A DNA stretch of 64,000 bases from Okamejei kenojei (GCA_035221665.1 CM069147.1:20522001-20586000); one strand, 5' to 3'; positions 9,679 through 49,000 are shown, numbered from the stretch's first letter. Notes: generated by a model not told the origin, from the letters alone. Translations and numbers: made by a program.

Positions 9679-11295
9679 CAATGGCTTGCAAAAGTATTCA
9701 TACCCCTTAAACTTTTCCACATTTTGTTGCGCTACAACCACAAACGTAAATGTACTTTGTTGGGATTTTAAGTGATAGACCAACACAAAGTGGTGCATAA
9801 TTGTGAAGTGGAAGGAAAATGATACATGGTTTCCAAATTTTATTACAAATAAAAAACTGAAAAGCGTGGCGTGCAAAAGTATTCAGCCCCCCAGAGTCAA
9901 TACTTTGTAGAACCACCTTTTGCTGCAATTACAGCTGCAAGTCTTTTGGGGTATGTCTCTACCAGCTTTGCACATCTAGAGACTGACATTTTTGCCCATT
10001 CTTCTTTGCAAAATAGCTCAAGCTCAGTCAGATTGGATGGAGAGCATCTGTGAACAGCAATTTTCAAGTCTTGCCAGAGGTTCTCAATTGGATTTAGGTC
10101 TGGACTTTGACTGGGCCATTCTAACACATGAATATGCTTTGATCTAAACCATTCCATTGTAGCTCTGGCTGTATGTTTAGGGTTGTTGTCGTGCTGGAAG
10201 GTGAACATCCGCCCCAGTCTCAAGTCTTTTGCAGACTCTAACAGGTTTTCTTCCAAGATTGCCCTGTATTTGGCTCCATCCATCTTCCCATCAACTGTGA
10301 CCAGCTTCCCTGTCCCTGCTGAGGAAAAGCATCCCCACAGCATGATGCTGCCACCACCATGATTCACAGTGGGGATGGTGTGGTCAGGATGATGTGCAGT
10401 GTTAGTTTTCTGCCACACATAGCGTTTTGCATTTAAGCCAAAAACTTCAATTTTGGTCTCATCAGACCAGAGCACCTTCCTCCACATGTTTGCTGTGTCC
10501 CCCACTTGGCTTGTGGCAAACTGCAAATGGGACTTCTTATGGCTTTGTTTCAACAATGGCTTTCTTCTTGCCACTCTTCCATAAAGGCCTGATTTGTGGA
10601 GTGCACAACTAATAGATGTCCTGTGGACAGATTCTCCCACCTGAGCTGTGGATCTCTGCAGCACCTTCAGAGTTACCATGGGCCTCTTGGCTGCTTCTCT
10701 GATCAATGCTCTCCTTGCCCGGCCTGTCAGTTTAAGTGGACGGCCATGTCTTGGTAGGTTTGCAGTTGTGCCATACTCTTTCCATTTTCGGATGAAGGAT
10801 TGAACAGTGCTCCATGAGATGTTCAAAGCTTGGGATATTTTTTGTTAACCTAACCTTGCTTTAAACTTCTCCACAACTTTATCCCTGATCTATCTGGTGT
10901 GTTCCTTGGGCTTCATGATGCTGTTTGTTCACTGATGTTCTCTAACAAACCTCTGAGGACTTCACAGAACATCTGTATTTATACTGAGATTAGTTTACAC
11001 ACAAGTGGACTCTATTTACTAATCAGGTGACTTCTGAAGGCAATTGGTTGTACTGGATTTTATTTAGGGGTATCAGAGTAAAGGGGGCTGAATACCTTTG
11101 CACGCCACACCTTTCAGTTTTTTATTTGTAAAAAAAATTGAAAACCATGTATCATTTTCCTTCCACTTCACAATTATGCGCCACTTTGTGTTGGTCTATC
11201 ACATAAAATCCCAATAAAATACATTTACGTTTGTGGTTGTAACGTGACAAAATGTGGAAAAGTTCAAAAGGTATGAAAACTTTTGCAAGCCACTG
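9679..11295 (-). mobile_element. Tc1-family DNA transposon, full length (1617 bp), nested in L1 ORF2
   Basis: About 210-bp TIRs (caatggcttgcaaaagtattc... and ...ttttgcaagccactg). TA follows the right end; the left TA has mutated to CA. The L1 frame FYQH-L-YTSK is restored when the element is removed. Confidence 0.97.
9897..10916 (-). pseudogene. Tc1 transposase, DD34E, two premature stops near the N-terminus
   Basis: ATG at 10916 (MKPKEHTR*...) is in frame with ORF 9897-10826. Motifs GRP, WSDETK, QHDNNPKH and SPDLNPIENLW, with 34 residues between the second D and E. Confidence 0.95.
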
Positions 11296-11521: not shown

Positions 11522-13212
11522 GCAATGACCCCTCTCTACCAGATGAACTGAACGAGTTCTACGCACGGTTTTAGGTTAAAAACAGCACCCAGACACATGC
11601 ACTACTGCCATCTCCCAGTGACCAGTTGCTCAGGCTGTCCGCAGCCGGAGTTAAAAAGGCCTTTGCCAGCATCAACCCACGCAAAGCCACAGGGCCGGAC
11701 AACATTCCTGGATGCGTTCTAAAAGACTGCGCCGAGCAACGGAAAGATGTCTTCACGGGCATTTTTAACACCTCGCTCAGCCAGGCAGTAGTGCCCATCT
11801 GTCTTAAGAGTGCCACCATTGTTCCTGTCCCGAAGAAACCAAACCCAGCCAGCCATAATGACTTTCGACCAGTGGCTCTAACACCCATAGTAATGAAGTG
11901 TTTTGAGCAACTGGTTATGCAGCATATCAAAAATAGCCTACCTGCTGACCTAGACCACTACAGTTCACCTACAGAGCCAACCGATCCACAGAGGACACAG
12001 TCTCAACAACACTGAACCTCGTACTGCCAAACCTTGATCGGAAAAATACTTATGCCAGGATCCTCTTCATAGACTTCAGCTCTGCTTTTAACACAATCAT
12101 TCCGCAGCAGCTGGTGGAGAAGTTGGAGTTATTGGGGGTTGATGCTGGGACATGTAACTGGGTCCTGAACTTTCTATCGCAACGGCAGCAGACAGTCAGG
12201 GTGGGCAGTAGGACATCAAAAACCATAGCCGTGAGCACTGGCTTGCCCCAAGGCTGTGTCCTAAGCCCCCTGCTGTTTAGTCTGCTTACACCCGACTGTA
12301 CGGCTAGACTCAACAACAACTTCATCAACAAGTTCGCTGATGACACAACAGTGGTGGGTCTCATCAGTAACAATGATGAGTCGGCGTACAGGATGGAGGT
12401 GGAGCTGCTCACAGGATGGTGCAAATCCCACAACCTCATTCTCAACGTGGGAAAAATGAAGGAGATGGTGGTTGACTTCAGGAGGGCGGGAAAACAACGC
12501 CAAACACCTCTGCACATCGATGGAGCTGCTGTGGAAAGGGTCAACAGTGTGAAGTTCCTAGGACTCCACCTGTCAGATGACCTGATGTCCACGACCAACA
12601 CCACAGCACTGGTCAAGAGAGCCCAGCAGCGACTACACCCTCGGTCTACGGAAAGCAGGTCTCCCCACTGCACACCTACAAACTTTTTATAGGGGGACAA
12701 TCGAGAGCACAGTAACGTACGGCATCACTTCCTGGTTCGGGAGCTGCAAGGCGTACGAATGACACCAACTGGACAGGATTCTGAAGACCGCCAGCAGGAT
12801 TATTGGTGCTCCACTCCCTTTCCTGCTGGACATATACAGGAAGAGATGTATCAGCAGAGCCATCTCCATCATCAAAGACCCCAACCACCCATCCTGCCAT
12901 CTGGGAAGAGGTACAGGAGCATCAGCTGCAAAACCCTCAGGATGCTCCTCAGCTTCTTCTCGCAGGCTATAAGACTGATAAACGGACTTTGCCCCCTGTC
13001 AAATTATTGCGCACCAACCACCAACCTGGACACACTGAAGCAGAGCCATTGTTGTGCCACTGCCGATTGGAACTCATGATATATGTATTTTTATTTTTAT
13101 TTCTATTTATTTTTTACCGCACACTGAATGGACACTGGTTGAGCAACGTTTTTTCGTTTCCTCTGGGTATGTAAGTACTCAGGAAAAATGATAATAAAGA
13201 TATACAATACAA
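11522..13212 (+). mobile_element. 5'-truncated Rex1/Babar-clade LINE nested in L1 ORF2
   Basis: ORFs 11626-12015 and 12114-12692 ([25 protein letters not shown]). The L1 frame (EIISPFL...YIHAFKENKL) resumes after it. Confidence 0.9.
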
Positions 13213-16090
13213 GATTTATATATACACGCTTTTAAAGAAAATAAACTAACAGAAACACTAACTGAGTCAACTATTACACTTATACCAAAAAAGCTTAAAG
13301 ATCTAGAAGACCCAGGCTCATATTGAGCCATAGCACTTCTAAATACAGATCAAAAAATATTAGCAAAGACCCTAGCGAGAAGATTGAGTAAATATGTTAG
13401 CAAACTAATAAACCCGGACGAAACAGGGTTTATACCAAAGAGATACTCATTAACAATTTGAGACGGCTGTTTAATATAATGTACTCGCATAATACTGAAG
13501 AAGACCTAGCAATTATTTCATTGGATGCAGAAAAAGCTTTTGATCAAGTAGCTTGGCAATATTTATTCAAAGTATTGCAAAAATTTAACATGGGAGAAAC
13601 TTTATCTCATGGGTAAAATTATTATACGAATAAGCTGATGGCTAGAATACTGACTAATAATATATTATCCCCGAAATTCCAATTAGCAAGGGGCAATAGG
13701 CAGGGGTGCGCACTATTGCCCCTGCTATTTGCACTAGTGATAGAGCCTTTCGCAGAAAGTATCAGAAGTCATTCGAATATTCATGGAGATAATACCAAAC
13801 GCTCAAATAATAAAATCTCATTATATGCAGACCACATATTATTATATATTACAAATTCACAAATTAGAATACCAAATATACTAAATTTAATAGAGGAATT
13901 TTGTTCTTTTTCAGGATATAGAATAAACTGGAACAAAAGCGAAATTATGAAGATAAAATCTCAAGAGCCGACACATCTGTTGAAATTCCCTTTTAGAATT
14001 GCAACAGAAAAATTTAAGTATTTCGGCATCCAAATTACAAGGAAATATAAATCACTATTCAATGCAAACTATATGCCTTTATTAACTAAATTAAATGGGT
14101 TGATTAAATTTTGTAAAATCTGCCGATGTTCTTAGCAGGCAGAATAAATGCAATAAAAATGATGTTCTTACCACAAATACTGTACCTATTTCAATCAATA
14201 CCAATATACTTACCAAAAAACGTCTTTAAAAAACTAGATTCTGATATTATAAACTTCATATGGGATTATAAATCACACAGAATTCAAAGAAAACACTTGT
14301 GTAAATCTAAAGAATCAGGGGGACTGACACTCCCTAACTTATTGTATTACTATTGGGCAGTGTATATTAAAAAATATAATCTACTCGTTGGACAGTTCTG
14401 CCCAACAGGTAGATTGGATAAGAATGGAGGAAGAGGATTGTTCCCCTTATAATACAGGAGCGATCCTTCTTTCCCCGATGAAACTGAAAAATATATTATA
14501 TAAGAAGAATCCAATTATTCACAGTATAATACGAATTTGTAAAACAAATAAAATTAACTTTAAAATTAAGAAAATTATTGCTTCTTTCTCCAATAGCTAA
14601 TAATCCCTCATTCAAACCATCTATTATAGATAAAACGTTTAATCAATGGGAAAGAATAGGAATTAAATTGATGGGAAATGTGTATGAAATGGGAAAACTT
14701 TTATCATTCCAACAATTACAACTAAAATATAATTTGAAAAGTAATCAATATTTCAAATATCTCCAAATTCATGATTATTTGAAAAAATATATACAAGGAT
14801 ATCAAACTCTAACCCCAGATTTATTAGAGGAAGGAATGAATAGAAAGGCAGAATCAAGCAATTTAATATCTTACTTATATAATATAATTCTAAATATAGA
14901 AACACCAACGACAAAGGCAATTAGAAGGGACTGGGAACAAGAGTTATTGATAAAAATTCTGTACGATAGATGGGAAAAAATCTATTATATGTAGATAAAT
15001 GTTCAATTAATGTAAGACATAACCTAATTCTATTTAAAATTATACATAGATTATATTATTCGAAAACTAGACTGCATAAAATATTTTCAAATGTTTCCCC
15101 CATCTGTGATAAATGTCTAACTCAAAATGCCACTATAGCACATTCCTTTGTCTCTTGTACAAAACTGCATAAATTTTGTAATGAAATTTTTGAATTTTTA
15201 CAAAACTATTTAACACAAAATTGAACCCCAATACAGAATTGATTATCTTTGGATCAATGGAAGAGGGAAGTAAACTAACTATATTCCAAGAAGCTTTTCT
15301 TAATTACGGTTTAATAGAAGCAAAAAAACTTATACTCAAATTTTGGAAAAACGCAATCACGGCAACATTCAAAATGTGGATTTCAAATATGTCGGAAACG
15401 CTACATCTTGAAGAAATGAGATTCCTCCTACTAGGCAAAGTAGACCAATTCTTAAAGACTTGGTCTCCTTTTATCAACTTTTTACAAGCAGATGGTGCAA
15501 CATAACATAACCTTAGAAATTAAATGGTTTAGAACCGGGTGACGGATGGGCAAAAATACGAAATAGGTAGATCTCTCCTAATCTCTCTTTTCTCTACTTT
15601 CTCCTTTTCTTTCAATCTTTTTAGCTTCTCATCTCTGTCCTTTATTTCTTTTGCTATCTGTCTCTACTTGCTTGTCTATCTATTCCGACACTCTTTATTT
15701 CTTTTTTCTCTCACTGTTCTTTTATTATTAAATTAAAAATACGAAGTTGTACAAGAATGGAAATATGTGTTTATGTATTAGGTACTCAAGTACCACCCTA
15801 TTGAACGTCTAACAAAAATAAACAAAAAACAGTTGTAAAGAGCGAGAGCAGAATTTAAGTTGCAGCCTCTGAAAAAAGTTGGACAATATATGCAAAATAA
15901 TATCCTGCGATGATAATTATCATTTCACTTCCCAGGATCGTAGGTGCAATAGAGATCATCAATTCTTAAAATGGCTGCAATAAACGATTATGAACCACAC
16001 TACAAAACCTAATTCATTACTAATCTTCAGCAGCGATATGCATTTAGATTCTCCGCCTCTCACGTTTATTTGAGCTGTTTTCATCTGCAT

Positions 16091-16168
16091 TCACTGCGCC
16101 GATGTTTTCTTTGTTTTGGGAAGCTGCAGAGCGGCATATATCACATCGTAAATTCCACTAGTTATTGT
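16091..16168 (-). CDS. Putative terminal cytoplasmic exon of the minus-strand Ig receptor, with ITIM
   Basis: Acceptor ttactttccag, then TITSGIYDVIYAALQLPKTKKTSAQ*. VIYAAL fits the ITIM consensus. Same strand as the TM exon and downstream of it. Confidence 0.6.
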   Translation of the reverse strand, partial: TITSGIYDVIYAALQLPKTKKTSAQ

Positions 16169-17134
16169 CTGGAAAGTAATTAAATACCATCCGTTAATTC
16201 ATTAACACGCATGACGCAAAACAAAGTTGTCACGAATTTATCAATTACCACCTTCAGTTTTTTTAAAGGCAAATACTAATTTTGGACTCTGCGTATCACC
16301 GACTTTCCCAATATTTACCGCCATCCACAAATGCCTGTTTTAGAATTTAGACTTGGTCCGTATATGTGCAACGTAGTGGGTGAAAAGGAAGTAGTCTTTC
16401 AGTTCACCCATGCACCTGCTACACTTTGTTATTGTGCTGCTTTAAAGCGCAGGTTTCGAGGGGGGGGGGGTATGTTTTGACTAGCTTAGGAGAGTAACTA
16501 TGTTGTATTCGTCGATCGGATTCTCTGCACCCGCTGCATCTGGTGGTGGAAGAGCTGAATGTTTAGGATTTAGCATGGCCATTTTAATTGGGTGGTGATT
16601 CACTTCTTGGGAGATGCGGAAAGCGCCCTCATCCAGCCAAGTGGAAAGTACCCAAACGCACGCCAAATTCCTTAGTTTAGATGTTGGAAGGATCTTGAGA
16701 TGAGAAGTTGTTTTTAATTTGCCACAGGAATATAACCATTAGCTTGTTTTTGAAGCCATGGTATCTATTGGACGACTTCGGTTGAATATCTGGTCAGTAG
16801 TTAACCCCCAGAATATAAATCGTCAGAGGCTCGACCTGCTAAGCTATTGAATACCAAATCTTTCTTGTTGGAAATAATCATTGTCTGGCATTGTTATGAT
16901 TTGAATGAGGTCGGCACATTCAGATTGTACACCTCTGTTATTTCCCCCGTTTTCCTTTTTGATTTACAGCAAACTTTAATGATAGAAGCGACTCTTGACT
17001 AACAATAGTTCCTTATTTAAATGCAAAACAAATTTCGCGTAAATCTAGATTATACATTATTGGTGTCTCTTTTATTTAGAGACATTTATTGCAATGTAAT
17101 CACTATGAATATTTGTAGCCGATAATTAGAATCA

Positions 17135-17670
17135 TAGAAAATAGGTGCTTTCTCCTTCGAGCCTGCACCGCCATTCAATATGATCATGGCTGATCATCCA
17201 ACTCAGTATCCTGTACCTGCCTCTCTCCATACCCCCTGATCCCTTTAGCCACAAGGGCCACATCTAACTCACTCTTAAATATAGCCAATGGACTGGCCTC
17301 AACTACCTTCTGTGGCAGAGAATTCCACAGACTCACCACTCTCTGTGTGAAAAAAAGATCTTCCCATCTCGGTCCTAAAGGACTTCCCCCTTATCCTTAA
17401 ATTGTGACCCCTTGTTCTGGAGTTCCCCAACATCGGGAACAATCTTCCTGCATATAGCCTGTTCAACCCCTTAAGAATTTTGTAAGCCTCTATAAGACCC
17501 CCCCCCCCCCTCAATCTCCTAAATTCCAGCGAGTACAAGCCGAGTCTATCCAGTCTTTCTTCATATGGAAGTCCTGCCATCCCAGGAATCAGTCTGGTGA
17601 ACCTTCTCTGTACTAATCAGTCTGGTGAACCTTCTCTGTACTAATCAGTCTGGTGAACCTTCTCTGTACT
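17135..17670 (-). mobile_element. CR1 LINE 3' fragment
   Basis: ORF 17299-17580 ([23 protein letters not shown]) and a CR1 3' tail. Confidence 0.9.
17587..17670. repeat. Three exact copies of a 28-bp unit (aatcagtctggtgaaccttctctgtact)
   Basis: Units at 17587-17614, 17615-17642 and 17643-17670, at the 5' truncation point of the CR1 copy. Confidence 0.95.
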
Positions 17671-17741
17671 CTGTAAATTGACTGTTAGTTTGACCTGCTG
17701 AATACATGACAGAATTTCTAAGGCTGTATTTCTTTACCCAC

Positions 17742-17785
17742 GTGCAATTTATAGTCAGAATATGGATTGCAGAAATTTGCTGACG
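17742..17785 (-). CDS. Candidate 44-bp cytoplasmic exon of the minus-strand Ig receptor
   Basis: Acceptor tgtcattttctacag and donor cac/gtgggt. Phase 1 in, phase 0 out, which links the TM exon to the ITIM exon (ASANFCNPYSDYKLH). Supported only by splice signals and phase. Confidence 0.3.
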
Positions 17786-18276
17786 CTGTAGAAAATGACA
17801 GATAGAAACGCGGTTTTCTCAGGTTTAGTAACTACCACATGTCTGGTATTCTGTTGTATAATCTGATTTGGCACCTCGTTTGGAAATGGATGGAAATGTT
17901 TTATGTTGCTTAACTGACGGTTGCCATTGCGTCTTGCGCTCCAAAATCAGTTTCACGTTAGGCAACCTGTTTCAATCCTCTTACATCACTGATATTCATC
18001 TGACGAGATGGAAAATTCCTCAGACATGTCTTGCTCGAAAAGCATGACAATTCCAATCGGTTAATGGCCGCTCAATCCGCCCAGTTCCAATGATCAGCCA
18101 AGAGTGTAAGATATAATCGAGGTTGCTATCAAGTGGCACTTGTTCACCAATATTTTCTCAGCACCACTCAATTTCGTTTTTTCTAAAATTACGCTGCTAC
18201 ACTATTTGGTCGACAAATTGACCAGAATTTCCGCAATTACATGAAAGTAATTATATATTACACCAAGTAAGGTGAT

Positions 18277-18366
18277 AGAAACATAGAAAATAGGTGCAGG
18301 AGTAGGCGATTCGGCCCTTCGAGCCTGCACCGCCATTCAATATGATCATGGCTGATCATGGCTGAT
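18277..18366 (-). mobile_element. CR1 3'-tail fragment
   Basis: atagaaacatagaaaataggtgcaggagtagg... matches the tails at 17135 and 45857. Confidence 0.8.
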
Positions 18367-19375
18367 TTAAGGTCTTAATGCAATCTATAGGTTTGCTAAA
18401 AAATTGCGGATGCATGGGCATTTCCAAGGTTGGAACTTACCTCAAGTAATCAAACTGGTGGTCAGGCACAAATACCTCACATGCAAAATTACTGTTCCAG
18501 GCACCATTTACATTAAGGCAGCATTTGACTAACTGTGGAAATAGGAAGCCCCAGAAAAATGGAATTCACTGGGCATGAAAGTGAACAATCGATAGTTAGA
18601 GTTTACCTCACAGGAGAAAATATGGTTGTGATTGTTGGAGTTCCCAGCCTGGGACATCTCCATCGATGTTCTTCAATGCAATATCCTATGGTCAGCCATC
18701 TTCAGCTCCTTTTTCAAAACATTTCACTGCCATGCTAAGGTCATAACGGGGGATGTTAGATGATGATTGCACAAGGCTTTGTTCCATTTGGAATGTTTCA
18801 GCAGACACAGCTCAACGTACCCACGCCTCAGACTATCCTTGTCTGGTTTGCGGATCTGGTGAGCGGATTTGCTGGCTTTACCTTGCACTAAACGTTATTC
18901 CCTTATCATGTATCTATGCACTGGAAATGGATCGATTGTAATCATGCATTGTCTCTCTGTTGACTGGTGAGCATGCAACAAAAGCTTTTCACTGTACCTC
19001 AGTACACGTGACAATAAACTAAACTAAACTAAACTTGAACAGCATTTCGATCTCGGCTGATAAGTGACTTTCATATTCAGCCTTTCAAGAAGGCACCCCA
19101 CTTTCTTTGCAATTATGGCGGGATATTACGCGGTGGCCCTACCAGTAAGGCCTTCATCCAGAAAATGTGTTAAAGAAAAGTACTTAAAATTATGCTGCTT
19201 ATCGACCTAGGATAAATGCACATAATATTCCTGAGGGCGGATCTGATACGGTTAGCTGCAAATTTTTAACTGCAATTATGAATTGGATTGAGCTTGAAGC
19301 AGACACCCTACAGGCCTTGTCAAGAACGCAACTTCCACTATTCTATTCTTAAACATGCCTGGCAAACAGAGTAAC

Positions 19376-19596
19376 TAGGGTACACAAAAGGCTGGAGAAA
19401 CTCAGCGGGTGCAGCAGCATCTAAGGAGCGAAGGAGATAGGCGACGTTTCGGGTCGAGACCCTTCTTCAGACAGAAGGGTCTCGACCCGAAACGTCGCCT
19501 ATCTCCTTCGCTCCTTAGATGCTGCTGCACCCGCTGAGTTTCTCCAGCCTTTTGTGTACCCTCGATTCCCCAGCATTTGCAGTTCCTTCTTTAACA
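19376..19596. mobile_element. Short Penelope-like repeat as a perfect palindrome (90-bp arms, 6-nt loop) with a 12-bp TSD
   Basis: Arm 19377-19466 is the reverse complement of arm 19473-19562, with loop tcagac. Direct repeat aaacagagtaac at 19364-19375 and 19597-19608. The Penelope family call is inferred. Confidence 0.8.
19443..19472 (-). ncRNA. Minimal type-I hammerhead-ribozyme-like motif
   Basis: Minus strand reads GU-CUGAAGA-A-GGGUC-UC-GACCC-GAAAC-GUC: CUGANGA core, 5-bp stem II, GAAA, and a GUC cleavage triplet. Confidence 0.5.
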
Positions 19597-21098
19597 AAAC
19601 AGAGTAACCAATAGTTTTCCAGAAATTATCACTTGTTCTCATGCCTCTTCGAGGTATTCATGTCGACTCCTTGCTCGCAATCAGAACATGTGGCCCTTGG
19701 TCACTCCTTTCTTCTCACTTCCCGAAGCAGCAGCCATTGAGAGACCTAAAGTACTATTCCAACTTGATTTAGCTAAGGAACTAGATATAGGGACATAATG
19801 TCCTGGGTTATGTTAATCTGCTTGATTTGACTGGGAACAATCCAGATAAGGATTGAAACAGGAAGTACAACCGATTTGTCTTGATATAAGTAAAGGCGCG
19901 GCGTGCAGAAACAAGGAATTAATGCCAATGTTTATGTTACTAATTGAGGTCTTAGTTGATGTACTCCGCTCAAATTAGGGTAGAATAACAGCAACTTTAC
20001 GAAATCCCGTATGTTCAAGGGCAGTGTAAAACAGATGTTGTTCTTCTTGTAGCAAATAAAAAAAACAATTCACAATTGAACGTTAATTTATTTGGGGTTG
20101 TTCTGATTGAGTAAATACGGAGAATCAATTTCTTCCCGAAGATATCAACTATCTAAATGATATCTTTCAAGAACGTTGCCTGAATAAGCAGACGATAAAT
20201 TGGAATATTTTTAATTATTTTAAAGTATAACCTGGGATAATAGTACGAAATGCTGCCTTCCATGGTTCTGTGGAATATTCTTTCTTCAAACATCAGGGGC
20301 CATTGTCCGCGAGCTATCACGGGTGTTGGAAGTGCGACGTGTTGGGTCAATTGCATGCGGATCCGAAACAATTGAAGACCAGACTGTTTTTCGGTACAAG
20401 CATTACATTGCACACGACTCTAAAAAAGGTTTTAATCAAAGTCGTACACAATTTCACCAAGTACTATAAGTTTCTATAAGTTAATAATTTGTCAATATCT
20501 TCCAGCACTCGATTGCGAACCTATTGCCTAAGTTCTTTCTCTGGCATTCGGGATCACTCTACACACTTATATTTATTAGTTTCTCGCTACCTAATTACTT
20601 TTTGATTCTTCTCGCCAAAGTAAATAACCATATATGTCTCCGCTTAATACTCTACATGCCGCATTTTTTAACGCATGCGCTTAACGTTTCTGATATGGAG
20701 TGTATGACAAAGTACTATGCGGGTTTTCTCTCACAATTCCAATTAAAATCAAGATCAAACGGACGGTACCAATGGTCAATAAGTTAACTGTTACAAATCA
20801 ATAGAGATACTCAAGCTCTGAATAATTATTTTATGCCGTTTGATCTGGTGGTGAATTCATATCTACAAAGTGTAAAAGATGATTAATTTCAGGTAAAATT
20901 GCTATCTTGATGTGCGATAGATTGGTGAATAATTCGAAGGGCGAGGCGAACTGTTTTCACTAGAAGTTATAGTTTAAATTTCATAATGAATTATCAATCA
21001 GATAGACCTTTAGAAATCTCGTATATTTCTTAATGATCACAATGTTACCATTCGAATTTACAAACGTAAACACTTGTTGAAATAGGCAGCGCTCTTAC

Positions 21099-21200
21099 CA
21101 TTCAATGGCTTGTACACTAGTTCTGCAAAAATTATTAACAGAGCTATGATTGCCAATCCGCCCTGCGCACACGTGAGAATCAAGATAATGGAATTGGGAC
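21099..21200 (-). CDS. Ig receptor exon 4: transmembrane
   Basis: Acceptor ttttgttcttgtag, donor g/gtaaga, phase 1/1. Encodes GPNSIILILTCAQGGLAIIALLIIFAELVYKPLN. Confidence 0.75.
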
Positions 21201-21964
21201 CTACAAGAACAAAATATGAAAATGTAAAAAATATGCATATGTAAGTACTTTCATCAATAGTACACGAGGTAGAGCATTTCAATGGTGTCTTTAAATCCTC
21301 ACAGCACATAAAAATATACAAACAATCCCAATTGCTCGTTCATGATGGGATTTATGCAGAAAAGCAAATCCCATTCCAAAATGGCTGCTTCCACGAACGT
21401 CAGCTATTAGGATAAAAACCGTTTGCTTTTCTATTGCAATGCCACACCGAAATCAACATCAACAAGCCGCATCAGCCTTCTATATTTCTAGTTGAATACT
21501 GAATATTTGCCGCAACACGTTTTGCAGAGCGGTTAGCACAAGAAGATAACCCAAGACAGGTCACAAGACCATTATACATTTAACATATAAAATTGACACC
21601 AAATCAACGTATTATGAGATATTAGAGGGCCTGACCAAACAACAATCGATAAGAATGAATATCTCTCGCATATCAAGACATTTATAGGTATCTCTCTTGG
21701 AATCTTATCTGGATCAGAAGGTTATGACTATTTTATCTGACTATATGACTTTAGACTCAATCCACTCAATAATTTCTGGGAAAATAGCCCATTCATCTGG
21801 AAAACTGACAGCTAATTCAATGTTGAATAACTTGCACGAGAACCAATTCAACCAGGGCACCACTGCATATTCCACTGGAGCGTCTATCAAATCTGCTATG
21901 GAATTGCCATATAATGTTCTTGCTATTGCACTCACACTCGTAGCACTCACACTCGTAGCAATAC

Positions 21965-24215
21965 GAGGGTGAGTGCTACGAGGGTGGAGAGAGTCAGAAC
22001 TGGACCTAGGGTGGAGATTTTTGATTGGAGAAAGGCTAACTTTGAGGGAATGCGTAAGGATTTTAAAGGAGTGAATTGGGACACTTTGTTTCATGGGAAG
22101 GATGTAGAAGAGAAATGGAGGACATTTAAAGGGGAAATTGTAAGAGTACAGAATCTTTATGTCCCCGTTAGGTTGAAAGGAAATAGTAAAAATTGGAAAG
22201 AGCCATGGTTTTGAAGGGAAATTGGACACTTGTTTCGAAAAAGGATAGATATCTACAATAATTATAGGAGGCATGGAGTAAATGAGGTGCTAGAGGAGTA
22301 TAAAGAATGTAAAAAGAATCTTAAGAAAGAAATTAGGAAGGCTAAAAGAAGATATGAGATTGCTTTGGCAAGAAAGGTGAAAGTAAACCCAAAGGGTTTC
22401 TACAGCTATATTAATAGCAAAAGGATAACGAGGGATAAAATTGGACCATTAGAGAACCAGAATGGACAGCTATCTGCAGAGCCAAAAGAGATGGGGGAGA
22501 TATTGAACAATTTCTTTTCTTCGGTATTCACCAAGGAGAAGGGTATTGAACTCTGTGAGTTAAGGGGAAAAAGTAGAGTAGCTATGGAAACTATGAGATT
22601 GAAAGAGGAGGAAGTACTGACACTTTTGAAAAATATAAAAGTGGATAAGTCTCCAGGTCCTGACAGGATATTCCCTAGGACATTGAGGGAAGTTAGTGTA
22701 GAAATAGCAGGAGCTATGACAGAAATATTTCAAATGTCATTAGAAACGGGAATAGTGCCGGAGGATTGGCGTACTGCGCATGTTGTTCCATTGTTTTAAA
22801 AAGGGTTCAAAGAATAAACCTAGCAATTATAGACCCATTAGTTTGACGTCAGTGGTGGGCAAATTAATGGAAAGGATACTTAGAGATAATATATATAAGC
22901 ATCTGGATAAACAGGGTCTGACCAGGAACAGTCAACATGGATTTGTGCCTGGAAGGTCATGTTTGACAAACCTTCTTGAATTTTTTTGAAGTGGTAACTA
23001 GGGAAATTGATGAGGGTAAAGCAGTGGATGTTGTCTATATGGATTTCAGTAAGGCCTTTGACAAGGTTCCCCATGGAAGGTTGGTTAAGAAGGTTCAATC
23101 TTTGGGTGTTAATGGCGGAGTAGCAAGATGGATTCAACAGTGGCTGAATGGGAGATGTCAGAGAGTAATGGTGGATGGCTGTTTGTCAGGTTGGAAGCCG
23201 GTGACCAGTGGAGGTGCCTCAGGGATCTGTGTTGGGTCCACTGTTGTTTGTCATGTACATCAATGATCTGGATGATGGGGTGGAAAATTGGATAAGTAAG
23301 TATGCAGATGATACTAAGATAGGTGGTGTTGTGGATAATGAAGTAGATTTTCAAAGTCTACAGAGAGCTTTGGGCCATTTGGAAAAGTGGGCTGAAAGAT
23401 GGCAGATGGAGTTTAATGCTGTTAAGTGTGAAGGCTACATCTTGGCAGGACAAATCAAAATAGGACGTACATGGTAAATGTTAGAGGAATTGAGGAATGC
23501 TGTGGAACAGAGGGATCTAGGAATAACTGTGCATAGTTCCCTGAAGGTGGAATCGCATGTAGATAGGGTGGTAAAGAAAGCCTTTGGTGTGCTGGCCTTT
23601 ATAAATCAGAGCATTGAATATAGGAGTAGGGAAGTAATGTTAAAATTGTACAAGACATTGGTAAGACCAATTCTGGAGTGGTGTACAATTTTGGTCGCCT
23701 AGTTATAGGAAGGATGTCAACAAAATAGAGAGAGTACAGAGGAGATTTACTAGAATGTTGCCAGGGTTCCAGCAACTATGTTACAGAGAAAGGTTGAACA
23801 AGTTAGGTCTTTATTCTTTGGAGCGCAGAAGGTTAAGGGGAGACTTGATTGAGGTCTTTAAAATGATGAAAGGGATAGACAGAGTTAACGTGGATACGTT
23901 TTTCCCATTGAGGGTAGGGAAGATTCAAACAAGAGGGCATGACATGAGAATTAAGGGACAGAAGTTTCGGGGTAACGTGAGGGGGAACTTCTTTACTCAG
24001 AGCGTGGTGGCTGTGTGGAATGAGCTTCCAGCAGAAGTGGTGGAGGCAGGATTGATTTTAACATTTAAGATTAAAGTGAATAGGTATATGGACGTGAAGG
24101 GAATGGAGGGGTATGGTCTGAGTGCAGGTAGATGGGACTAGGGGAAAACAAATGGTCGGCACGGACTGGAAGGGCCGAGAGGGCCTGTTTCCGTGCTGTA
24201 ATTGTTATATTGTTA
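21965..24215 (+). mobile_element. CR1 LINE, 5'-truncated ORF2 (RT), frameshifted, intronic and antisense to the Ig gene
   Basis: ORFs 22230-24141 ([51 protein letters not shown]) and a 3' tail. Confidence 0.95.
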
Positions 24216-24439
24216 TAATACCTGCATGTACATTTTCCGGTTTTGTACAAGCACGTCGTAATTCCTTCTTACACAATCTACCATCTCAATTTTGAATTAA
24301 ATACTTATTTTCTATTCTCTCTTCTTTTCTATGGTTCTACCCAAAACAGGCACTGACTTTTAACAATGTCTTTCTCTGTGTGGCATCGACACGCCACTCC
24401 GAGCATATCATCCCATCCTTCAATACCAAATATGTATTT

Positions 24440-24725
24440 AGTTGAGTTTAGTTTAGTTTAGAGATACAGCGCGGAAAAAGGCCCACCGAGTCCGCACCGA
24501 CCAGTGATCGCGCACATTAACACTATCCTACACACACTAGGGACAATTTACACTTATACCAAGCCAATTAACCGACAAACCTGCACGTCTTTGGAATGTG
24601 GGAGGAAAGCAAAGATCTCAGACAAAAATCCACGCGGTCACGGGGAGAACGTACAAACTCCGTACAGACGGCACCCGTAGTAGGGGTCGGCGCTGGAAGC
24701 GCTGTGAAGCTGCAACTCTACGTCT
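24440..24725 (-). mobile_element. SINE fragment (same family as 40845-41135)
   Basis: Reverse complement shares the core ggagtttgtacgttctccccgtgaccgcgtgg and the (taaac)n tail. Confidence 0.75.
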
Positions 24726-25798
24726 GCGCATATGTACGTCTACGTCCACGTCTATCGAAATATGAGGAGCAGATATTTCTCCAATTACAGTTCCTGAGAT
24801 TCAACGCAATTATTTATCTTCCTTGCCAGAAATTCTGTTCTGATGACACTTTTGGACCACACGTGAATGCCTTCAATAATATTTACAATTCGGTAACATT
24901 GATGGACTGCCTATCCCCCATTTTATCTTACTTGCAAGTTCTTCATTCTGGCATTTGCCACCCAGAGACCTGGCTATTCCTGATCAGATCTCTTAATCTA
25001 CGCAACATAAGAGCGAGGTCTCGCAAAACACATCACATGCCCGAGAACAAATCCCATTTCCTATCAAATCATTGTTTTTTTGTCATGTTTATTCCGTATT
25101 AATTTGATTTTCAAATTTGTAATTTGTTCTCATATCACTGCCTGACTTTCTTGCTCCTTATGTCTACAAACTCGTTCGTCCGTGCGGCTTCTATGAGAAG
25201 GTCTCGAGCCGAGGCGGAGTTTCTTCCCACATGTCATCAGGACTGTAAACTCTGATCTCACCACGGAGTAATTACTGTTGTGTCTTTAAAAAATATATAA
25301 ATACTGTTCTGTTCTGTTCTGTTGTTTTGCACAATCCCGCAGGCATTGTCACTTGCATTTCACTGTACATCTTGTATGTGTATGTGCCAATAATGTGGAC
25401 TTGACGTGACCCGTTCCTTCTTTCCATGGATGCTGCCGTTGCCCGCTGAGTTGCTCCAGCATTTTGTGTTTACCTTCGACTTCTATGAAATGTTTTTTGG
25501 GCCTTTATCGTTTTCCAATCGACTTCCTCCCAATGCAATTATCTCCCACGCATTAAAGTGCGGCATTCTATTATTCTACTTCACGTTTCTTCTTTTAAAA
25601 TTGTCTTAAGGTAGTCATTGTGCAAGCATTTAATCATCTGCCCATTGGGATGATTAATGCTGGTACATTGAAGCGTTGGTGTAAAAATGATTCACCTTAA
25701 CCCTTTCACCCTATATGATTGCTATAGATCCAATTGTTTAATCCGCTATTCTGATCAGCTACTAACTCATTCTCAACTGCAAATATTCCCATTCTTAC

Positions 25799-26089
25799 CT
25801 GGCTCGACGATGTATGTGAAGCTGGCCGGTACCTTAAGGGAGATATGCGATACTAAACAGGTGTACACATCTTGACCCCGGGCAGGCTGCGCTATTTCCA
25901 AAAAGCTGGAAGCTTCATACAATCGGTCCGCATTCCTGTATTTCACGGTTTCAATGCCGGTTAGAATTTCCACATTATTTTTCCTCCAGAAGATTTCTAA
26001 TGTCTCTGGATAAAACGCATCTGTTTTACACACGAGTTTTGCAGCCAAACTCTCCTCAAGTGAAACAATTTTCAAAGGCGTTGGGGAAT
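25799..26089 (-). CDS. Ig receptor exon 3: C1-set Ig domain
   Basis: Acceptor ttcttctgcttaag, donor g/gtaaga, phase 1/1. LVCKTDAFYPETLEIFW...YTCLVSHISL has the C1 hallmarks (C-x4-FYP, W, YxCxVxHxSL). Confidence 0.9.
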
Positions 26090-26925
26090 CTTAAGCAGAA
26101 GAAAAAGTTATATTGCATGTTTCCATTACACTTCAGTGAACTATATTATAATTATATATCACGTTGGTTAACCATGGATTTTTTTGAACACTGGATATAA
26201 AAATTGAGCGATTTTAGACATTATACCAGGACGGTTAATATTTGGGTAATATGGGAGAAAGGCGCCAATGTTCTGAATGGAAATGACTGACTTCCTATGT
26301 TAACTTTAACCTTTGCGACATTATCGGTATTTCTTTTATTGAAAATAATGGTATTAATGTAGATGTCACAGATTTCTCGAGTCGGGGGTAGGGCGTAATT
26401 ACGTGCATTGATTACATTTCGGTGCTCAATTCGTTGGTCAATTGATTGTTCAGATCTTGGGATGGAGATTTTCAATGGTGCATACTTCACAATGGGAATG
26501 TTCAGAGTTCAATGCTACTGCTGTTACACGTTCATGCGTCGAGTCAAATATAAGATTTGGATATCGAAGCATCAGAAAGATACCTGGGCAATGAATGAGC
26601 ACGGGAAGCAGCTGTACGCTGAAATGGAATATCAGTGATGTTGCTGATATGGAATATCCCAACTTTAATGTTGCGTACAATACCTGCTCTAGGGAAAAGT
26701 TGCTAAAAATGTTCTCCATTTCTTTCCTCTGTGAAAAGAAAACGGACTTTCTACCACAGCTATTCATTTCAGTTCAAGACGCAGTTCAAGTCGTCCATTT
26801 CAGTATCTTTCTTGGGATTTATTAGCAGCGGGATTTTATCAAGTTGGAACATTTTATAAACGACGCATTTATATGTAAATGACAGAGAACAGAAAATCTC
26901 TTAATTTTTGAACATGTACACTCAC

Positions 26926-27231
26926 CGAACACAGTGAGCTGACAGCCACTTCCATTCCCGATGTGTTGATTCTGGTGCTTTGCTTGACAGTAATATATTC
27001 CAGAGTCTGCAACATTGACATTATGGAGAACAAATGTTCCCCTTCCGATACCTACATTAAATTGTTTTCTCGTATCTGGTTCCAATGATGTTCTCATGCC
27101 TTCTCTCCACCAAAAAACTGAAATAGTATCTTGCGATATGGGAAATTTGCAGAACATGGTAAAGTTTGCACCGATGGGAACATCTGCATCATTAGGAAAT
27201 TGATACACTGAGTTCGAAGAGACTTCCACAA
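26926..27231 (-). CDS. Ig receptor exon 2: V-set domain with built-in J-like G strand
   Basis: Acceptor ttttcggcag, donor g/gtgagt, phase 1/1. VYQFP...MFCKF...VFWW...DSGIYYC...IGNGSGCQLTV. Confidence 0.92.
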
Positions 27232-27420
27232 CTGCCGAAAATTAAGTAAGAAATTAGTTGCATATACTGGATAAGGAAAAGAATAGCAGATTAATACAAA
27301 ACACTCATGGAAGAAGGGCACCCAAATTGGGGCATTTTTGCTTTATATGCCGGATGTAAACAGGAAAAAAATGTAAAATATGAATTGCATTTCAGGAACA
27401 ACACAAATATCTTAACTCAC

Positions 27421-27475
27421 CTAGCCAAATTATACCACATAGCGCCATGTACCGTACAGGGAATTTCGCCAACAT
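27421..27475 (-). CDS. Ig receptor exon 1: signal peptide
   Basis: ATG at 27475, MLAKFPVRYMALCGIIWL, 55 bp, donor g/gtgagt. Phase 1 matches exon 2. Confidence 0.8.
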
Positions 27476-43000: not shown

Positions 43001-46000
43001 ATAATTTGGTTGAATTCATGATCAAACCTGGGTTTAGCTGAGATTGCAAGACCAATTTCTCTCCGGGGATGAATAAAGTTTTATTGTACCGTATCGATTA
43101 AGTTGTTCAGATGATTTTCCTCTATCTCTCTCCAGGAAAATACTTTATGAAGATTTTCGTTTATGGCTCTCAGATATTGCAGGTGTAAAACTGGAAAGCA
43201 CAGTTGATATATCCTGCGCTAAGTATGAATACACAGGTATATGGTGTTAATATGGCAAATATGTGAGATATTGATTACATGTCATTGTACTGTGGGTTCC
43301 GCCTATGCTGTATTATGTGGTACATCTGGTGTTTCAGTTGCAATGTTGCATGGCATGCACATTTAATTATCTTTGTGAGATGTATAGAATGAAAATTTTT
43401 GCTTTCAGTTGCTGATATCCAAGGATTATTTTACTATGGGAATTCTATAAATGCTATTTTTACCTTCATAATTGGTGAATCAAAACAGTGATATCACTAG
43501 ATATAATGTATAATCATCATGTGTTGTGCTACACAGTGTAAATATTACATGACTCTTTTAAGGGTGGTCTTCAGGTTTTCACTGTAGTTGTATTAGAAAA
43601 TCCTAAAAGTCTCCTATGTTGAAAATGTTGATTTGGAGCATGTATTTAATATAATGGGTGTGCTTTGAAAAACACACAGCTTATGTCTAAGGTAGATAAA
43701 CAGCTTATGTCTAATATTATTTTTATGTACAACTGGCTATCTTGAGTATTGATAAGGTGAAGGATTATTGCTACATCATTTAGAAATGTTACGATTTGTG
43801 TACATTGCCTTAACTTAAAGTGCTTGAATTGTTACATAGGTAAAATTGACTTTTATGTATAATCGTGAGGTATATAACCAATTAACTTTTCATCCTTGTT
43901 GAGTGATAATTGCTGACTGGTTCACCAGAGTTTTACTCCATTGTCCACTGTAAGCTTCCTATAAGGTGATTGCCATACATAGAAGACACCTTCTGCAGAC
44001 TCGGATCATCCATGAAGAGGAATGTTAGCGGTAGACAAATGCTCATTATAAAGCAATTTTGATTGCAAAAATGCATGACAATGCAGGCAAGAATTGATTT
44101 GCAGTGTGAGCAGTGCATTGAGAAAACTGCATATATAGCATTGCACAACCAACTCTGAATAGAGATTTTGTGTGATTGTTTCTCTTAAATAATATTACTT
44201 GTGAGCCTTCAGATCAAGCAGAAACTGCTTCTTCTGCAGTAACTGGTAGCTGTCATTATTCCAACCAGTGTGGTTCAAAGTCCAGCTGACAGGATTTTCA
44301 TACTGGAAGAACAACACCAAAACGTATTCCACAAAATTCAGTGTTCCAATGTTGACATTAATAAACGCGGTAATGTAAAACATTTTTAAGGCAGCCCCTT
44401 ACGGCATTGCAGAGACAAATTTCTGATCCCTTTTTGTAAAGGCATCCTCAGAAGATATAACAGGAAAGCATTCCTTTTCCATTTTTCTGGAAAGCTATTT
44501 TCACGTGTGTTGCCTGATGTCCAAAGTTTGCACGTATTATTGTTTTCATATGAGTCTAGACTTGGTGCCTTAACACTGTATTTAATCACAAACCAATTGC
44601 AACTCTTTGTTATCAATTGATTTTATAGCAGGCACCCTTGAACTGAAAAATAAGAAACGTTGATAGACTTTCTGTTGCCAGGAGAAAACATGATGCGATC
44701 CAAGAATGGATTGAGGAAGGAGCCTGGCTTGAGTAACTTGGTATACAGAATGGTGGATGTAATCAAACCATTAATAAAAGTTATATGATTTGAAAAACAC
44801 ATTTAAAATATTCTGTAAATGTAACAGTTACATTTGTTGAACTGAAAATGAAATGCTCAGTACCCTTTCATAATTTCTGAGAAAGTCTAATTAAACACTT
44901 TTAGGTAGCAACTATATTGATGTTTTGAACCCTATGCTGTTGCAGATGTGTTGCTCTGTCATGATGATGAATTAGAAGGGCGGAGAATTGCCTTCATCTT
45001 GTATCTTGTGCCTGAGTGGCAAGGAAGTGATGGTGGTACCTTGGATCTTTATGATGCAGATGGTGAGTAGGATTTGCAACATATCACTGACTTATATCGC
45101 TTTAGCCATGATGTACTGGTGACTCCCAAAGGTGTCTAACATATATTCATCATTATGGTGCACGTAGTTTCTGCTGATGTTTTCATTCTCAGTAATTAAT
45201 GTTTTGAATACCCTGACAACATCCAATGCATAAAACCAACTGCTGAAGAATCTCGGCGAGTCAGGCAGCATTTGTGGAGGGAAATGGACAAACTATATTT
45301 CCGTTTGGGATCCTATTTTAAACTGTTTCTCGCTGAGTTCCTCCAGCAGTTTCATTTTTTTGCTCATGAGCTGCTGAGTTCCTCCAGCATGGTATAATTG
45401 GAGGGAATCTTGTGAGTCACCTGTGCCCTGAAGCTGGCTTTCACGTGGGTCCAGTTGTCATATTAATTACAGCTCGGATAGGAACAGACACAAAGAATAG
45501 TTCATAAAACAAGTCGGTTTATTCAAGGCCTTAACAGGACGAGCTGGGAAACACACTGAGCGAACCCAAAGTGTCTCAAAGATACACAGCATCCATTGCA
45601 TTTTATATTCCCACAACATAATGGTTACATGTTCATTTTATATATTTTAAATAATTCATCATTGATCAATGTCTCTGTAGTCTTATCTTGTTTTTATTCC
45701 CAGTTATCTTTAACCTTCTGACCCCTTTTAGAAAATCACTCTTCCCATTTGCAATAAAAACACTATTTCCTGATCAATTTTCTTTCCCTCAACTTAGTTT
45801 ATAGCGCCCAATGTTTCTGATAACAGGCTAGCTATGCTGTGGAATCTAAACACCTTAGAAACATAGAAACATAGAAATTAGGTGCAGGAGTAGGCCATTC
45901 AGCCCTTCGAGCCTGCACCGCCATTCAATATGATCATGGCTGATCATCCAACTCAGTATCCCGTACCTGCTTTCTCTCCATACCCTCTGATCCCCTTAGC

Positions 46001-49000
46001 CACAAGGGCCACATCCAACTCACTCTTAAATATAGCCAATGAACTGGCCTCAACTACCCTCTGTGGCAGAGAGTTCCAGAGACTCACCACTCTCTGTGTG
46101 AAGAAAGTCTTTCTCATCTCGGTCTTAAAGGATTTCCCCCTTATCCTTAAGCTGTGACCCCTTGTCCTGGACTTCCCCAACATCGGGAACAATCTTCCTG
46201 CATCTAGCCTGTCCAACCCCTTAAGAATTTTGTAAGTTTCTATAAGATCCCCTCTTAATCTCCTAAATTCCAGAGAGTATAAACCGAGTCTATCCAGTCT
46301 TTCTTCATAAGACAGTCCTGACATCCCAGGAATCAGTCTGGTGAACCTTCTCTGCACTCCCTCTATGGCAATAATGTCCTTCCTCAGATTTGGAGACCAA
46401 AACTGCACGCAATACTCCAGGTGTGGTCTCACCAAGACCCTGTACAACTGAAGTAGAACCTCCCTGCTCCTGTACATCTTATTACATCTATTTATTGCTT
46501 CTAACATATTTAAGTTCCCTTCACTCTGTTGGCCTCTTTTCCCATCATGCTTCCCCAGCATGTTAGCTCCTGAGTTACAAGTTGCTCATTTTTCTTGTAA
46601 TTTTCAGATTATCCTATATTTATAAGTGTCATTGTGAAAAATGTAGATAGAATTTTTTTATTTTTTTATTTTGTTTAAATTAGAAGTACATAATAAAAAA
46701 ACATTTTGTTTGTGGTAGTCATACATTATTAATATTGTCAATATTATCAATTATTTAATAGTCCTACTTCTATATAAAAAATATATATATATAGATAGAA
46801 CATAAGAGAGAGAGAGAAAAAAAAAAACAAAAAAAACAGAAGGTATAATAAAAGAGAATGGAATAATTAACTAATAATACATCATTGGAGATATGTCCGT
46901 AAATTATAAAATGTAACTCTTCATCTAATCCTTAATTTGGGTTTCAGTCAGGTTCTCGTGCCGAACCAGTTTGCCCCTTCAAATAGTCAAAACATGGAGA
47001 CCATGTTCTGATAAAAAGTTCTTGTTTGTCCATTAAGACAAATCTTATTCTTTCCAAATGTAGGGTCTCCGACATTTCCATAATCCACATTTTGATTGTG
47101 GGTGTTAAGGGACCTTCCCAAAATTTTAATATATACATTTTTTCCAAATTATTATACTGTAGTCGATAAAGTTTTTTTGGCTTGTTGTAAATATTTGATT
47201 TTGTTCTAATATTGCTAATATTATTAGTTTTGAGTCGGGGTCCAATTGGGTGTTGACAACTTCCGAAATTATCTTAAAAATTTCCGTCCAAAAATTATTA
47301 ATTTTTATACAATTTACAAATGTATGCGTTAGGTTAGCCTCTGAGTGCTGACATTTTTCACAGATAGGAGATATACTTGGGGAAAATTCTATTTAATTTC
47401 GTTTTTGAATAATGTAATCTATGTAATACTTTAAATTGTATTAAGGAATATCTAGCATTTAACGAACAGTGATGTATATGTTGTAAGCTTTCATCCCAAA
47501 TATCTTGCATTAAAATGTAGATAGAATTTGAGGATCTTATTTATTATGGGTTTTCAGCAGGGTAAATAGGCCTTGCAGATTTGGGCAAATTCCTTATTGT
47601 AGAATTCAGAATCAAAACGATTGCCATAACAAACAAATTTAAAATGAGGGAAAAACATTTATTTATAGAGTCCTAGAGTGTGGAAACAGGCCCTTTGGCC
47701 TAATTTGCCCACATCAGCCAACATGTCCCAGCTACACTAGTCGTGTAGCTACACTTGTTGTATGCAGTAAACTAGCTACCCTAGTTATATGCAGTAAAAT
47801 TGGGACGCAACATTTTATTATTGATCAAGGGTCTTTTTACAAGTAATACAAAAGTCTTGATTTAGATGTTGGACTGGATGGACCCATGGTCCATGATAAC
47901 ATCAGCAGATTGAGTGCCAACCAGAGAACTCTCATTAGTGTGGGTCCGACAACTCTCCAGCATTTTGACACCAGTCCGAATAAGGTGGTTCACCAATCTA
48001 CCATCATAAACATCCATTCCCTCCACCTCCAGCACACTCTCTACAATAGTCATAAGGGAACACACTTGCCTGCAGATTCAGCATCAATTTGTACACCATT
48101 ATTTTTGGAAATAAATTGTCATACCTCATTAACTAGTTCTAACACACTGAGTGACCTCCCCTACCCCACTATGGAGCACCTTCACCAATCGACTAGACTT
48201 CTGCTGTCACTTCTAGTCTTCAGTGGAAGGTCACGGCAGAAGATGAGGGTATGCAATCTTGTTTGTGAGTGTGGAAGTGGTATAGGGCAATTATATTTGA
48301 TAAGTTGCAAGAATATTAAATATATTATACTTGCTTGTTTAGAAATTGCAGACTTGCACTGATGCTTTTCAATCTAATTGTCTTCTATAGACCATTACCA
48401 GCCTCGAGAGATTGTCAAGTCATTAACTCCAACATGGAACTCATTAGTTTTCTTTGAAGTTTCTCCTGTCTCTCATCATCAGGTACAGATGTGGAAAAAG
48501 TTCATAATAAGCTAACTGTGGACAAACAGACAAAGATGTTTCAGATGAAGACTTCAGACATTTGGAACCTTTGTTCTTGTTTGACAAACTTGATTTGAAG
48601 ATGTTGTGATAGGTATACTGTCATAGGTGTGTTTTTTCATTATGCCCGTGATATTATTGGAATAGGAATGCCCTTTGTAAAAATACACATGAAAAGAAGC
48701 ATAATAGAGAATGCTAGTTAGATTTGGATACACCCGAGTCAGGCAGCAACATTCTTGCAGACAGAGTTATCCTCTAACTAGAGATAATTCTGTTAAACTG
48801 ACAACATAAACATTGGACTTAAGAAGGACGCAAGAGAAGGTGTGCCATCTGGTACGTTGATCAGCGCTAACACAAACTGTAAAAACTGGTGCTGCCAATA
48901 GCTAACTATCCTGCTGTTATGTTTGGCTCCTTCTGGCACTGCTGTCCAATTGATGTGGGACATTGAAGATTTCCATTAGAGTTTGAGCTTATTTTGCACT

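Follow-up and report, generated by a model that had tools for sequence, protein, structure and literature searches.

Two kinds of described receptor serve as a background to the gene reported here. The first is represented by UrIg and UrIg2, non-rearranging elasmobranch genes in which a germline-joined variable-joining (VJ) immunoglobulin (Ig) domain precedes C1-type domains, nine of them in nurse-shark UrIg2 and eleven in the epaulette shark model; UrIg2 is a disulfide-linked homodimer and UrIg forms homodimers too, UrIg is linked to the major histocompatibility complex (MHC) and UrIg2 to the Ig/T-cell receptor (TCR) complex, and the term ITIM (immunoreceptor tyrosine-based inhibitory motif) is absent from the UrIg2 paper (PMC12227049). 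The second is SIRPα, whose peptide DITYADLNLPKGKKPAPQAAEPNNHTEYASIQTS, beginning DITYADLNLPKGKKPAPQ and running to HTEYASIQTS, engages the tandem SH2 domains of SHP-2 (PMC5589908). Here we describe a six-exon, apparently intact gene on the minus strand of a 64,000-nucleotide stretch of Okamejei kenojei DNA (GCA_035221665.1, CM069147.1:20522001-20586000; hereafter the window, from whose first letter all positions are counted). Its product is probably a type I membrane protein of 291 amino acids, in which a split leader is followed by a short germline-joined VJ-type Ig domain, a single C1-set domain, hardly any stalk, a transmembrane (TM) helix, and a short cytoplasmic tail. Its most likely function would be that of an inhibitory, probably weakened, leukocyte receptor recruiting an SH2 phosphatase via phosphorylated VIYAAL. 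Sequence comparison confirms that the gene belongs to a large multigene family, so far seen only in cartilaginous fish (chimaera, sharks, and rays). We call this family SIRP-like because its tail and layout appear to match SIRPα, and we do not call it a SIRP, as it has one C1 domain instead of two.

The exon frames, read directly from the sequence and with the candidate linking exon 17785-17742 included, add up to 291 amino acids, and the exons are listed in Table 1. The junctions of the leader, V, C1, and TM exons, four in all, are each phase 1 with canonical AG/GT signals; both this phase-1 joining and a product of about this length had been proposed in a first-pass annotation of the same DNA, and both hold. 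The leader donor, AG/GTGAGT, lies after position 27421, and the leader is 55% identical to those of ray relatives (MSGKFTVSYMALLATTWL) by tblastn. When 17 relatives were searched against the window by tblastn, family proteins matched the leader, V, C1, TM, and last exons collinearly on the minus strand, and no second C1 exon was found in the window, leaving a single C1 between V and TM. Sequence searches and the fold prediction were made exon by exon. The Pfam scan found a C1-set domain (PF07654) in the C1 exon at 45.3 bits (E 1e-11; cut-off 21) and a V-set domain in the V exon at 32.7 bits (cut-off 26), in agreement with the domain types first assigned. Among solved structures, UrIg2 is the top match of the C1 exon, which also matches Ig constant domains and MHC II beta2; it is 35-64% identical to family C1 domains, and about 60-64% identical to those of the closest members (tblastn). 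The TM exon bears the family's C-A-x-G-G motif, matches the family tail profile at E 2e-6 (among 442 six-frame segments), and ends at the same residue as in relatives, as judged from RefSeq isoform ends. Its TM segment has no charged residue (no Arg or Lys), and the basic anchor is weak (AELVYKPLN).

The family was recovered by a HMMER scan of the V exon against 1.8 billion representative sequences, with giant multi-Ig proteins set apart; the single-stretch relatives are 38-57% identical to the V exon. They come from mantas (Mobula), stingrays (Hypanus, Hemitrygon), an electric ray (Narcine), a sawfish (Pristis), a horn shark (Heterodontus), catsharks (Scyliorhinus), bamboo sharks (Chiloscyllium), the white shark (Carcharodon), a smooth-hound (Mustelus), a sevengill shark (Heptranchias), and the elephant fish (Callorhinchus). 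In the layout that they share, a leader precedes a short V that closes with GNG[ST]G-x-L-x-V, and this is followed by a C1 domain reading PPTPLKI...CKTAAFYPE...YTCLVSH, a TM with C-A-x-G-G, and, in many, a tyrosine-rich tail. The gene in the window agrees with them in exon order, in phases, and in motifs (GNG[ST]G-x-L-x-V, PPTPLKI, CKTAAFYPE, YTCLVSH, TM CAxGG, and LTYAALQL), with 53-59% identity to ray members in V and about 60% in C1. At least seven kinds of RefSeq name are in use for these relatives (SIRPα/SHPS-1-like, NCR3LG1-like, Ig lambda-like, tapasin-related-like, TCR beta-like, MHC class II-like, and PD-L1-like), and these names are automatic guesses, not evidence; 'tyrosine-protein phosphatase non-receptor type substrate 1-like' is one label found on members. 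The suggestion that the gene might stand for an uncharacterised elasmobranch family calls for amendment: a search of the available literature found no publication on the family, but the gene is not a one-off, since members are already in RefSeq from rays, sharks, and the chimaera under inconsistent names. Word searches with the V exon, a ray relative, and an alignment of the family yielded, in place of a skate protein, only a 93%-identical Logan open reading frame (ORF). In a tree of V domains, the gene pairs with the 93%-identical ORF from another public assembly (P0002) with a Shimodaira-Hasegawa-like approximate likelihood ratio test (SH-aLRT) support of 99. The pair falls within a batoid clade (SH-aLRT 97), in keeping with the first-pass placing of the host among cartilaginous fish, and is sister (93) to a 16-gene stingray/manta expansion; such a place beside the stingrays and mantas, and not among them, suits a skate. 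Given this sister position, the gene is co-orthologous to many ray genes and is not the one-to-one orthologue of a characterised gene; no one-to-one orthologue emerged among family members either.

Family tails carry four tyrosine motifs that, in an alignment of 20 relatives, are conserved from the chimaera to rays: x-A-Y-A-S-L-N (motif 1), x-I/V-Y-S/A-Q (motif 2), L-T-Y-A-A-L-Q-L-x-D-S-K-x-T (motif 3), and T-x-Y-A-D/E-V (motif 4), the last 23 residues after motif 3. To judge from differences among RefSeq isoforms, exon borders in the family fall behind the TM exon (...KRSH/G), behind a 44-nucleotide exon (INTSSLDRCQNEEP), and ahead of TK-x-x-G...LTYAAL. Many RefSeq members are without the four-tyrosine tail, so it is not a defining feature of the whole family. 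In two horn shark members (P0154 and P0178) a tail unit ending TVY[PS]Q / TVYAQ is duplicated internally and adds a tyrosine motif, which shows that these tails evolve by gain and loss of exon-sized units.

The last exon of the gene matches ray relatives at E 0.007-0.04 (tblastn) and the family tail profile at E 0.003 among the same 442 segments, and by these matches it is clearly a homologue of the family ITIM exon. With stop-interrupted matches excluded, the ITIM pattern turns up about 20 times in three minus-strand frames over the 9 kb that lie downstream of the TM exon; a pattern match alone therefore means little, and the support for VIYAAL is its homology to the family motif. Of the family's SIRPα-like double-tyrosine motif, this copy has kept the first half (VIYAALQLPKTKK), VIYAAL included; among the four family motifs, only motif 3 is present (VIYAALQL). 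The inhibitory tail of the first-pass annotation thus stands as to its ITIM exon and must be scaled down as to its extent, with one tyrosine motif of four and a stop before the distal one. The gene's DVIYAALQLPKTKKTSAQ is identical at 10/18 positions to the start of the SIRPα peptide (PMC5589908). The family's last exon matches SIRPα at Y-A-x-L-x-L-P, at the basic residues that follow (Y-A-x-L-x-L-P-x-x-K), and at H-T-x-Y-A-x-[IV]-x-T-S, and the two tyrosines are 23 residues apart in full-length members and 24 in SIRPα. Full-length members have four tail tyrosines, as SIRPα does, whereas this copy has one; a pair resembling the SHP-binding one of SIRPα is present in those relatives and is not kept here, where the stop precedes the second tyrosine. 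A search of the tail peptide against solved structures gave no match. For a full-length ray relative (P0020), the nearest language-model clusters are SHPS-1-like (0.97) and SIRP alpha (0.96), and the family profile scores 105 bits against SIRPα structure 2wng over V and C1 (D1-D2, positions 25-215). SIRP, the tail of which the family matches at the SHP-binding motif, is the nearest described kind, and not NKp30 or TCR.

If the TM exon were spliced directly to position 16168, the frame would be lost (...KPLN-DNN-stop). The two must therefore be linked by an exon of length 3n+2, and since the last junction must be phase 0, this exon would end at 17742 (donor CAC/GTGGGT). The segment 17785-17742 ranks first by a heuristic splice-site score among 170 open phase-compatible exons (12.3; the runner-up, inside a repeat, scores 9.2), and it sits in non-repeated DNA. 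In length and phases it equals the first cytoplasmic exon of the family, known from the manta isoform P0160, which joins the family's 44-nucleotide exon straight to the ITIM exon, as in the model here. A tail that includes this candidate exon is the best available model, though unproven.

Several observations weigh against an inhibitory, SIRP-like receptor. A TGA stop lies at 16093-16091, where relatives run about 18 residues on to the fourth tyrosine, and the relatives' juxtamembrane basic cluster KLKRSH is replaced here by ELVYKPLN; either change could signal decay. Between 21098 and 16169, whole-tail and part-tail profiles gave no significant match to the first cytoplasmic exon of the family or to the middle one, which bears motifs 1 and 2. 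The 44-nucleotide exon shows no homology to family cytoplasmic exons (profile E 44), and the confident exons have stronger donors. A run search gave no RNA support: three small public runs from one study, which contain 0-11% of words, look like low-coverage DNA over 15800-21500, with pile-ups over repeats only and unique parts at depth 0-2, and show no joint at an exon border; being DNA-like, they carry no information on expression, tissue, or cell type. The profile that matches SIRPα also gives 83-86 bits for Ig light chains (one V-C1 unit) and 129 bits, summed over three stretches, for UrIg2, so that the ectodomain is no more like SIRP than like Ig light chains or UrIg2, and the SIRPs of mammals and birds have two membrane-proximal C1 domains (D2 and D3) where this gene has one. 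Finally, a word-index search, limited by that index, retrieved no family member from bony vertebrates. The in-frame sequence past the stop (MQMKTAQINV...) contains no tyrosine. One segment resembling AEQ...TAYASLN...GFRK, at 20045-20001 (EEQHLFYTALEHTGF then RK), was considered and rejected on its poor splice scores and a profile E of 4.9.

The alternative that survives best, unlikely but to be taken seriously, is that the gene is real and its product is without a working ITIM, either ending after the TM exon (read-through ...NGKSAAYFNKCLRL-stop) or joining TM to 16168 out of frame, which would leave a short-tailed non-signalling or decoy receptor. Some RefSeq isoforms of relatives do stop just past the TM exon or carry short unrelated tails (P0152, P0168, and P0163), and both the linking exon's want of homology and the frame of the direct splice speak for such an ending. 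However, the reading frame of the last exon remains open over 35 codons and retains its match to the family ITIM motif, and between the TM and last exons lies an exon of correct phase and exact family length whose splice signals are the best among 170 candidates. Some of the same facts could be read as those of a young or incipient pseudogene, intact-looking and silent, with a decaying tail: the stop is premature relative to all full-length relatives, the middle tyrosine exon and the basic membrane anchor are lost, and the introns are packed with retroelements. We consider this quite unlikely, as all six exons are open with canonical splice sites. In addition, P0002, whose V exon is open, differs from the gene at 7/100 positions in the V exon and at about 6/34 in the translated intron read-through, which hints at constraint, although the numbers are too small for significance. 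A weakened inhibitory receptor with a 44-nucleotide linking exon remains our preferred reading.

The V exon is unbroken from YYCQAKHQNQHI through GNGSGCQLTVF to a splice donor, with contiguous F and G strands. As first noted, it includes the J-like G strand (N-G-S-G-C-Q-L-T-V), and because the exon runs unbroken into the donor, this strand is germline-fused, with no room for a recombination signal. The V-set match covers strands E-G only, and Ig_2, Ig_3, ig, and I-set score similarly. The cysteines C28 and C82 are 54 residues apart, compared with about 65 in classical V domains. AlphaFold2, run with a 47-row family alignment, predicts the fold with a predicted local distance difference test (pLDDT) score of 92. 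The strands of the model are A, A', B, C, D, E, F, and a bulged G; C' and C'' are absent, and residues 43-54 are a loop. In all 47 rows W40, D75, G77, Y79, and C81 are invariant. The best single-domain sequence match among solved structures is the shark IgNAR V 4hgk (E 1e-4), and in structural comparison IgNAR V comes closest, with TCR Valpha and NCAM I-set domains within 1 Z unit of it, which is a tie, at 21-28% sequence identity. On this predicted fold, a short, IgNAR-V-sized VJ domain appears to be the accurate description. Two sequons, NFT and NGS, occur in the exon. The Asn of the family's N-G-[ST] sequon occupies the position of the Phe/Trp of Ig/TCR J segments, where a likely glycan would be expected to hinder classical V-V pairing. 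In this copy Cys replaces the family's Ser/Thr in the J motif (GSGCQLTV; 26938-26952, minus strand), a change common to P0002; it is speculation that this Cys might permit a disulfide dimer.

The V domain also bears on two further explanations. To our knowledge, B7-family V domains have no J-like G-x-G-x-x-L-x-V strand, and such a strand is conserved in the cartilaginous-fish family. We consider it very unlikely that the gene is an orthologue of B7-H6 (NCR3LG1), the NKp30 ligand, which its V-plus-C1 ectodomain, the automatic NCR3LG1-like names of relatives, and a second, NKp30-like V exon 35 kb off would otherwise recommend. The best 60 solved structures for the family profile include Ig, UrIg2, and SIRP chains and no B7-H6, the tail is SIRPα-like (PMC5589908), and the same relatives are also named SIRPα-like, Ig-lambda-like, tapasin-like, and TCR-beta-like, so that the names are not evidence. 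That the gene is a rearranging antigen-receptor chain (Ig light chain or TCR) in germline-joined form, as its V-plus-C1 architecture with a J-like strand and the existence of germline-joined Ig genes in cartilaginous fish might suggest, is hardly credible given the uncharged TM exon, the ITIM tail, the short V without C' or C'' strands, the single exon holding V and J throughout the family from chimaera to rays, and second-best named matches that are SIRPs.

For the receptor that we favour, the V domain would bind a cell-surface or pathogen ligand, the tail tyrosine would become phosphorylated, phospho-VIYAAL would recruit an SH2 phosphatase, and activation of the bearing leukocyte would be dampened. 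Because only the first tyrosine of the pair is kept and the middle exon is unrecognisable, signalling would be weaker than in full-length relatives, unless the protein acts as a dimer. Expression in natural killer (NK) or innate cells is pure conjecture.

Table 1. Exons of the receptor gene and associated elements, in window coordinates
Feature	Coordinates	Strand	Description
Leader exon	27421..27475	-	ATG at 27475; MLAKFPVRYMALCGIIWL + 1 nt; 18 codons + 1 nt; phase 1; split leader
V exon	26926..27231	-	Short VJ-type Ig domain; acceptor ...tttcggcag; 3' end ...GNGSGCQLTVF + g, donor gtgagt
C1-set constant-domain exon	25799..26089	-	PTPLKIV...LVCKTDAFYPE...W...YTCLVSH; contains KLVCKTDAFYPETLEIFW; donor gtaaga
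Transmembrane exon	21099..21200	-	GPNSIILILTCAQGGLAIIALLIIFAELVYKPLN + g; donor gtaaga
Candidate first cytoplasmic exon, 44 nt	17742..17785	-	Phase 1 in, phase 0 out; (A)SANFCNPYSDYKLH
Last coding exon	16091..16168	-	TITSGIYDVIYAALQLPKTKKTSAQ-stop; carries ITIM VIYAAL
AATAAA polyadenylation-like signal	16065..16070	-	About 20 nt past the stop (sequence reading)
Long interspersed nuclear element (LINE) reverse-transcriptase remnant in C1-TM intron	21969..24141	+	ORFs with reverse-transcriptase-like translations; not part of the gene product
High-copy retroelement 3' fragment, intron between 44-nt exon and last exon	17132..17580	-	ORF translations; very large contig pile-up at 17137-17709

Repeats occupy much of the introns and surroundings of the gene. 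Very-high-copy dispersed repeats, on which tens of thousands of contigs are stacked, lie in the introns at 17137-17709, 18092-18473, 18856-19046, and 19238-19619, and the last of these blocks holds an inverted ORF pair (19402-19530 on the minus and 19409-19537 on the plus strand) with near-identical translations. Outside the genes, much of the window is filled by transposon ORFs, a Tc1/mariner-like transposase and several LINE reverse-transcriptase pieces (9897-10826 and 45953-46561 on the minus strand; 132-1521 and 12114-12692 on the plus strand). A second germline VJ-type V exon is found on the plus strand at 62937-63272 (…GVYYCRVEGEYTGNGTGVTLEV); it is 31-43% identical to family V domains and, in the V tree, joins the sawfish members P0141 and P0189 (SH-aLRT 98) on the family's other main branch; any C1 exon belonging to it must be past the end of the window. 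Exons of OGFOD1, the sole neighbour gene identified, separate the two receptor genes at 51481-56031 on the plus strand, and the ORF at 55687-56031 matches the structure of human OGFOD1 (4nhx) at E 3e-14. A conserved housekeeping gene thus lies within the receptor cluster and could anchor synteny analysis.

Non-rearranging VJ-C1 genes bear on the form of antigen receptors before the RAG transposon, a question that has been active since the UrIg and UrIg2 papers, and the present family, widespread in the chimaera, sharks, and rays, offers a simpler layout, in which a short V and a single C1 are joined to an inhibitory tail. The family ties, by its tail, to mammalian SIRPα, and its V resembles that of IgNAR. 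We regard as tentative, and on balance unlikely, the further proposal that the family represents SIRP in cartilaginous fish, with a germline VJ domain, a single C1, and an SHP-binding double-tyrosine tail, in which case SIRP-type inhibitory receptors would have been present in the jawed-vertebrate ancestor and the V would be the nearest non-rearranging relative of IgNAR V, a domain reportedly proposed to derive from a cell-surface receptor of such a kind. If the SIRP reading is true, SIRP-type brake receptors would predate the split between cartilaginous and bony fish. The family also bears on how paired-receptor clusters trim or lose inhibitory tails. The gene described here is one more member, with a tail half-way between the inhibitory and tail-less forms; compared with full-length members, its tail stops short of the distal tyrosine, and it lacks both the middle tyrosine exon and the basic anchor that follows the TM and has Cys for Ser/Thr in the J motif.

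Set beside the known systems, the gene shares with NKp30 (NCR3) a short I-like V with a J-like G-N-G-[ST] strand, and the NKp30 structure 3noi is among its structural matches (template modelling score 0.77). NKp30 has no C1 domain and signals via a charged TM residue and adaptors, in contrast to the C1 domain, uncharged TM, and ITIM of this gene. PRARP is said to have a single V domain. Rearranging Ig and TCR chains are built from separate V and J segments with recombination signals at their sides, which are replaced here by one exon ending in a splice donor. The V domain of shark IgNAR (VNAR) is likewise short and without C'', but it is made by RAG rearrangement and stands on the five C1 domains of a secreted or membrane antibody, whereas here V and J are germline-fused on one C1 with an ITIM tail. 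With UrIg and UrIg2 the gene has in common a germline VJ exon, a split leader, C1-type constant domains, and restriction to cartilaginous fish, and it differs from them in having a single C1 and an ITIM tail in place of many C domains. Like SIRP, it places an N-terminal Ig domain with a germline J-like strand before a C1-set domain and a type I TM, on a V that is about 12 residues shorter between its cysteines and without C''.

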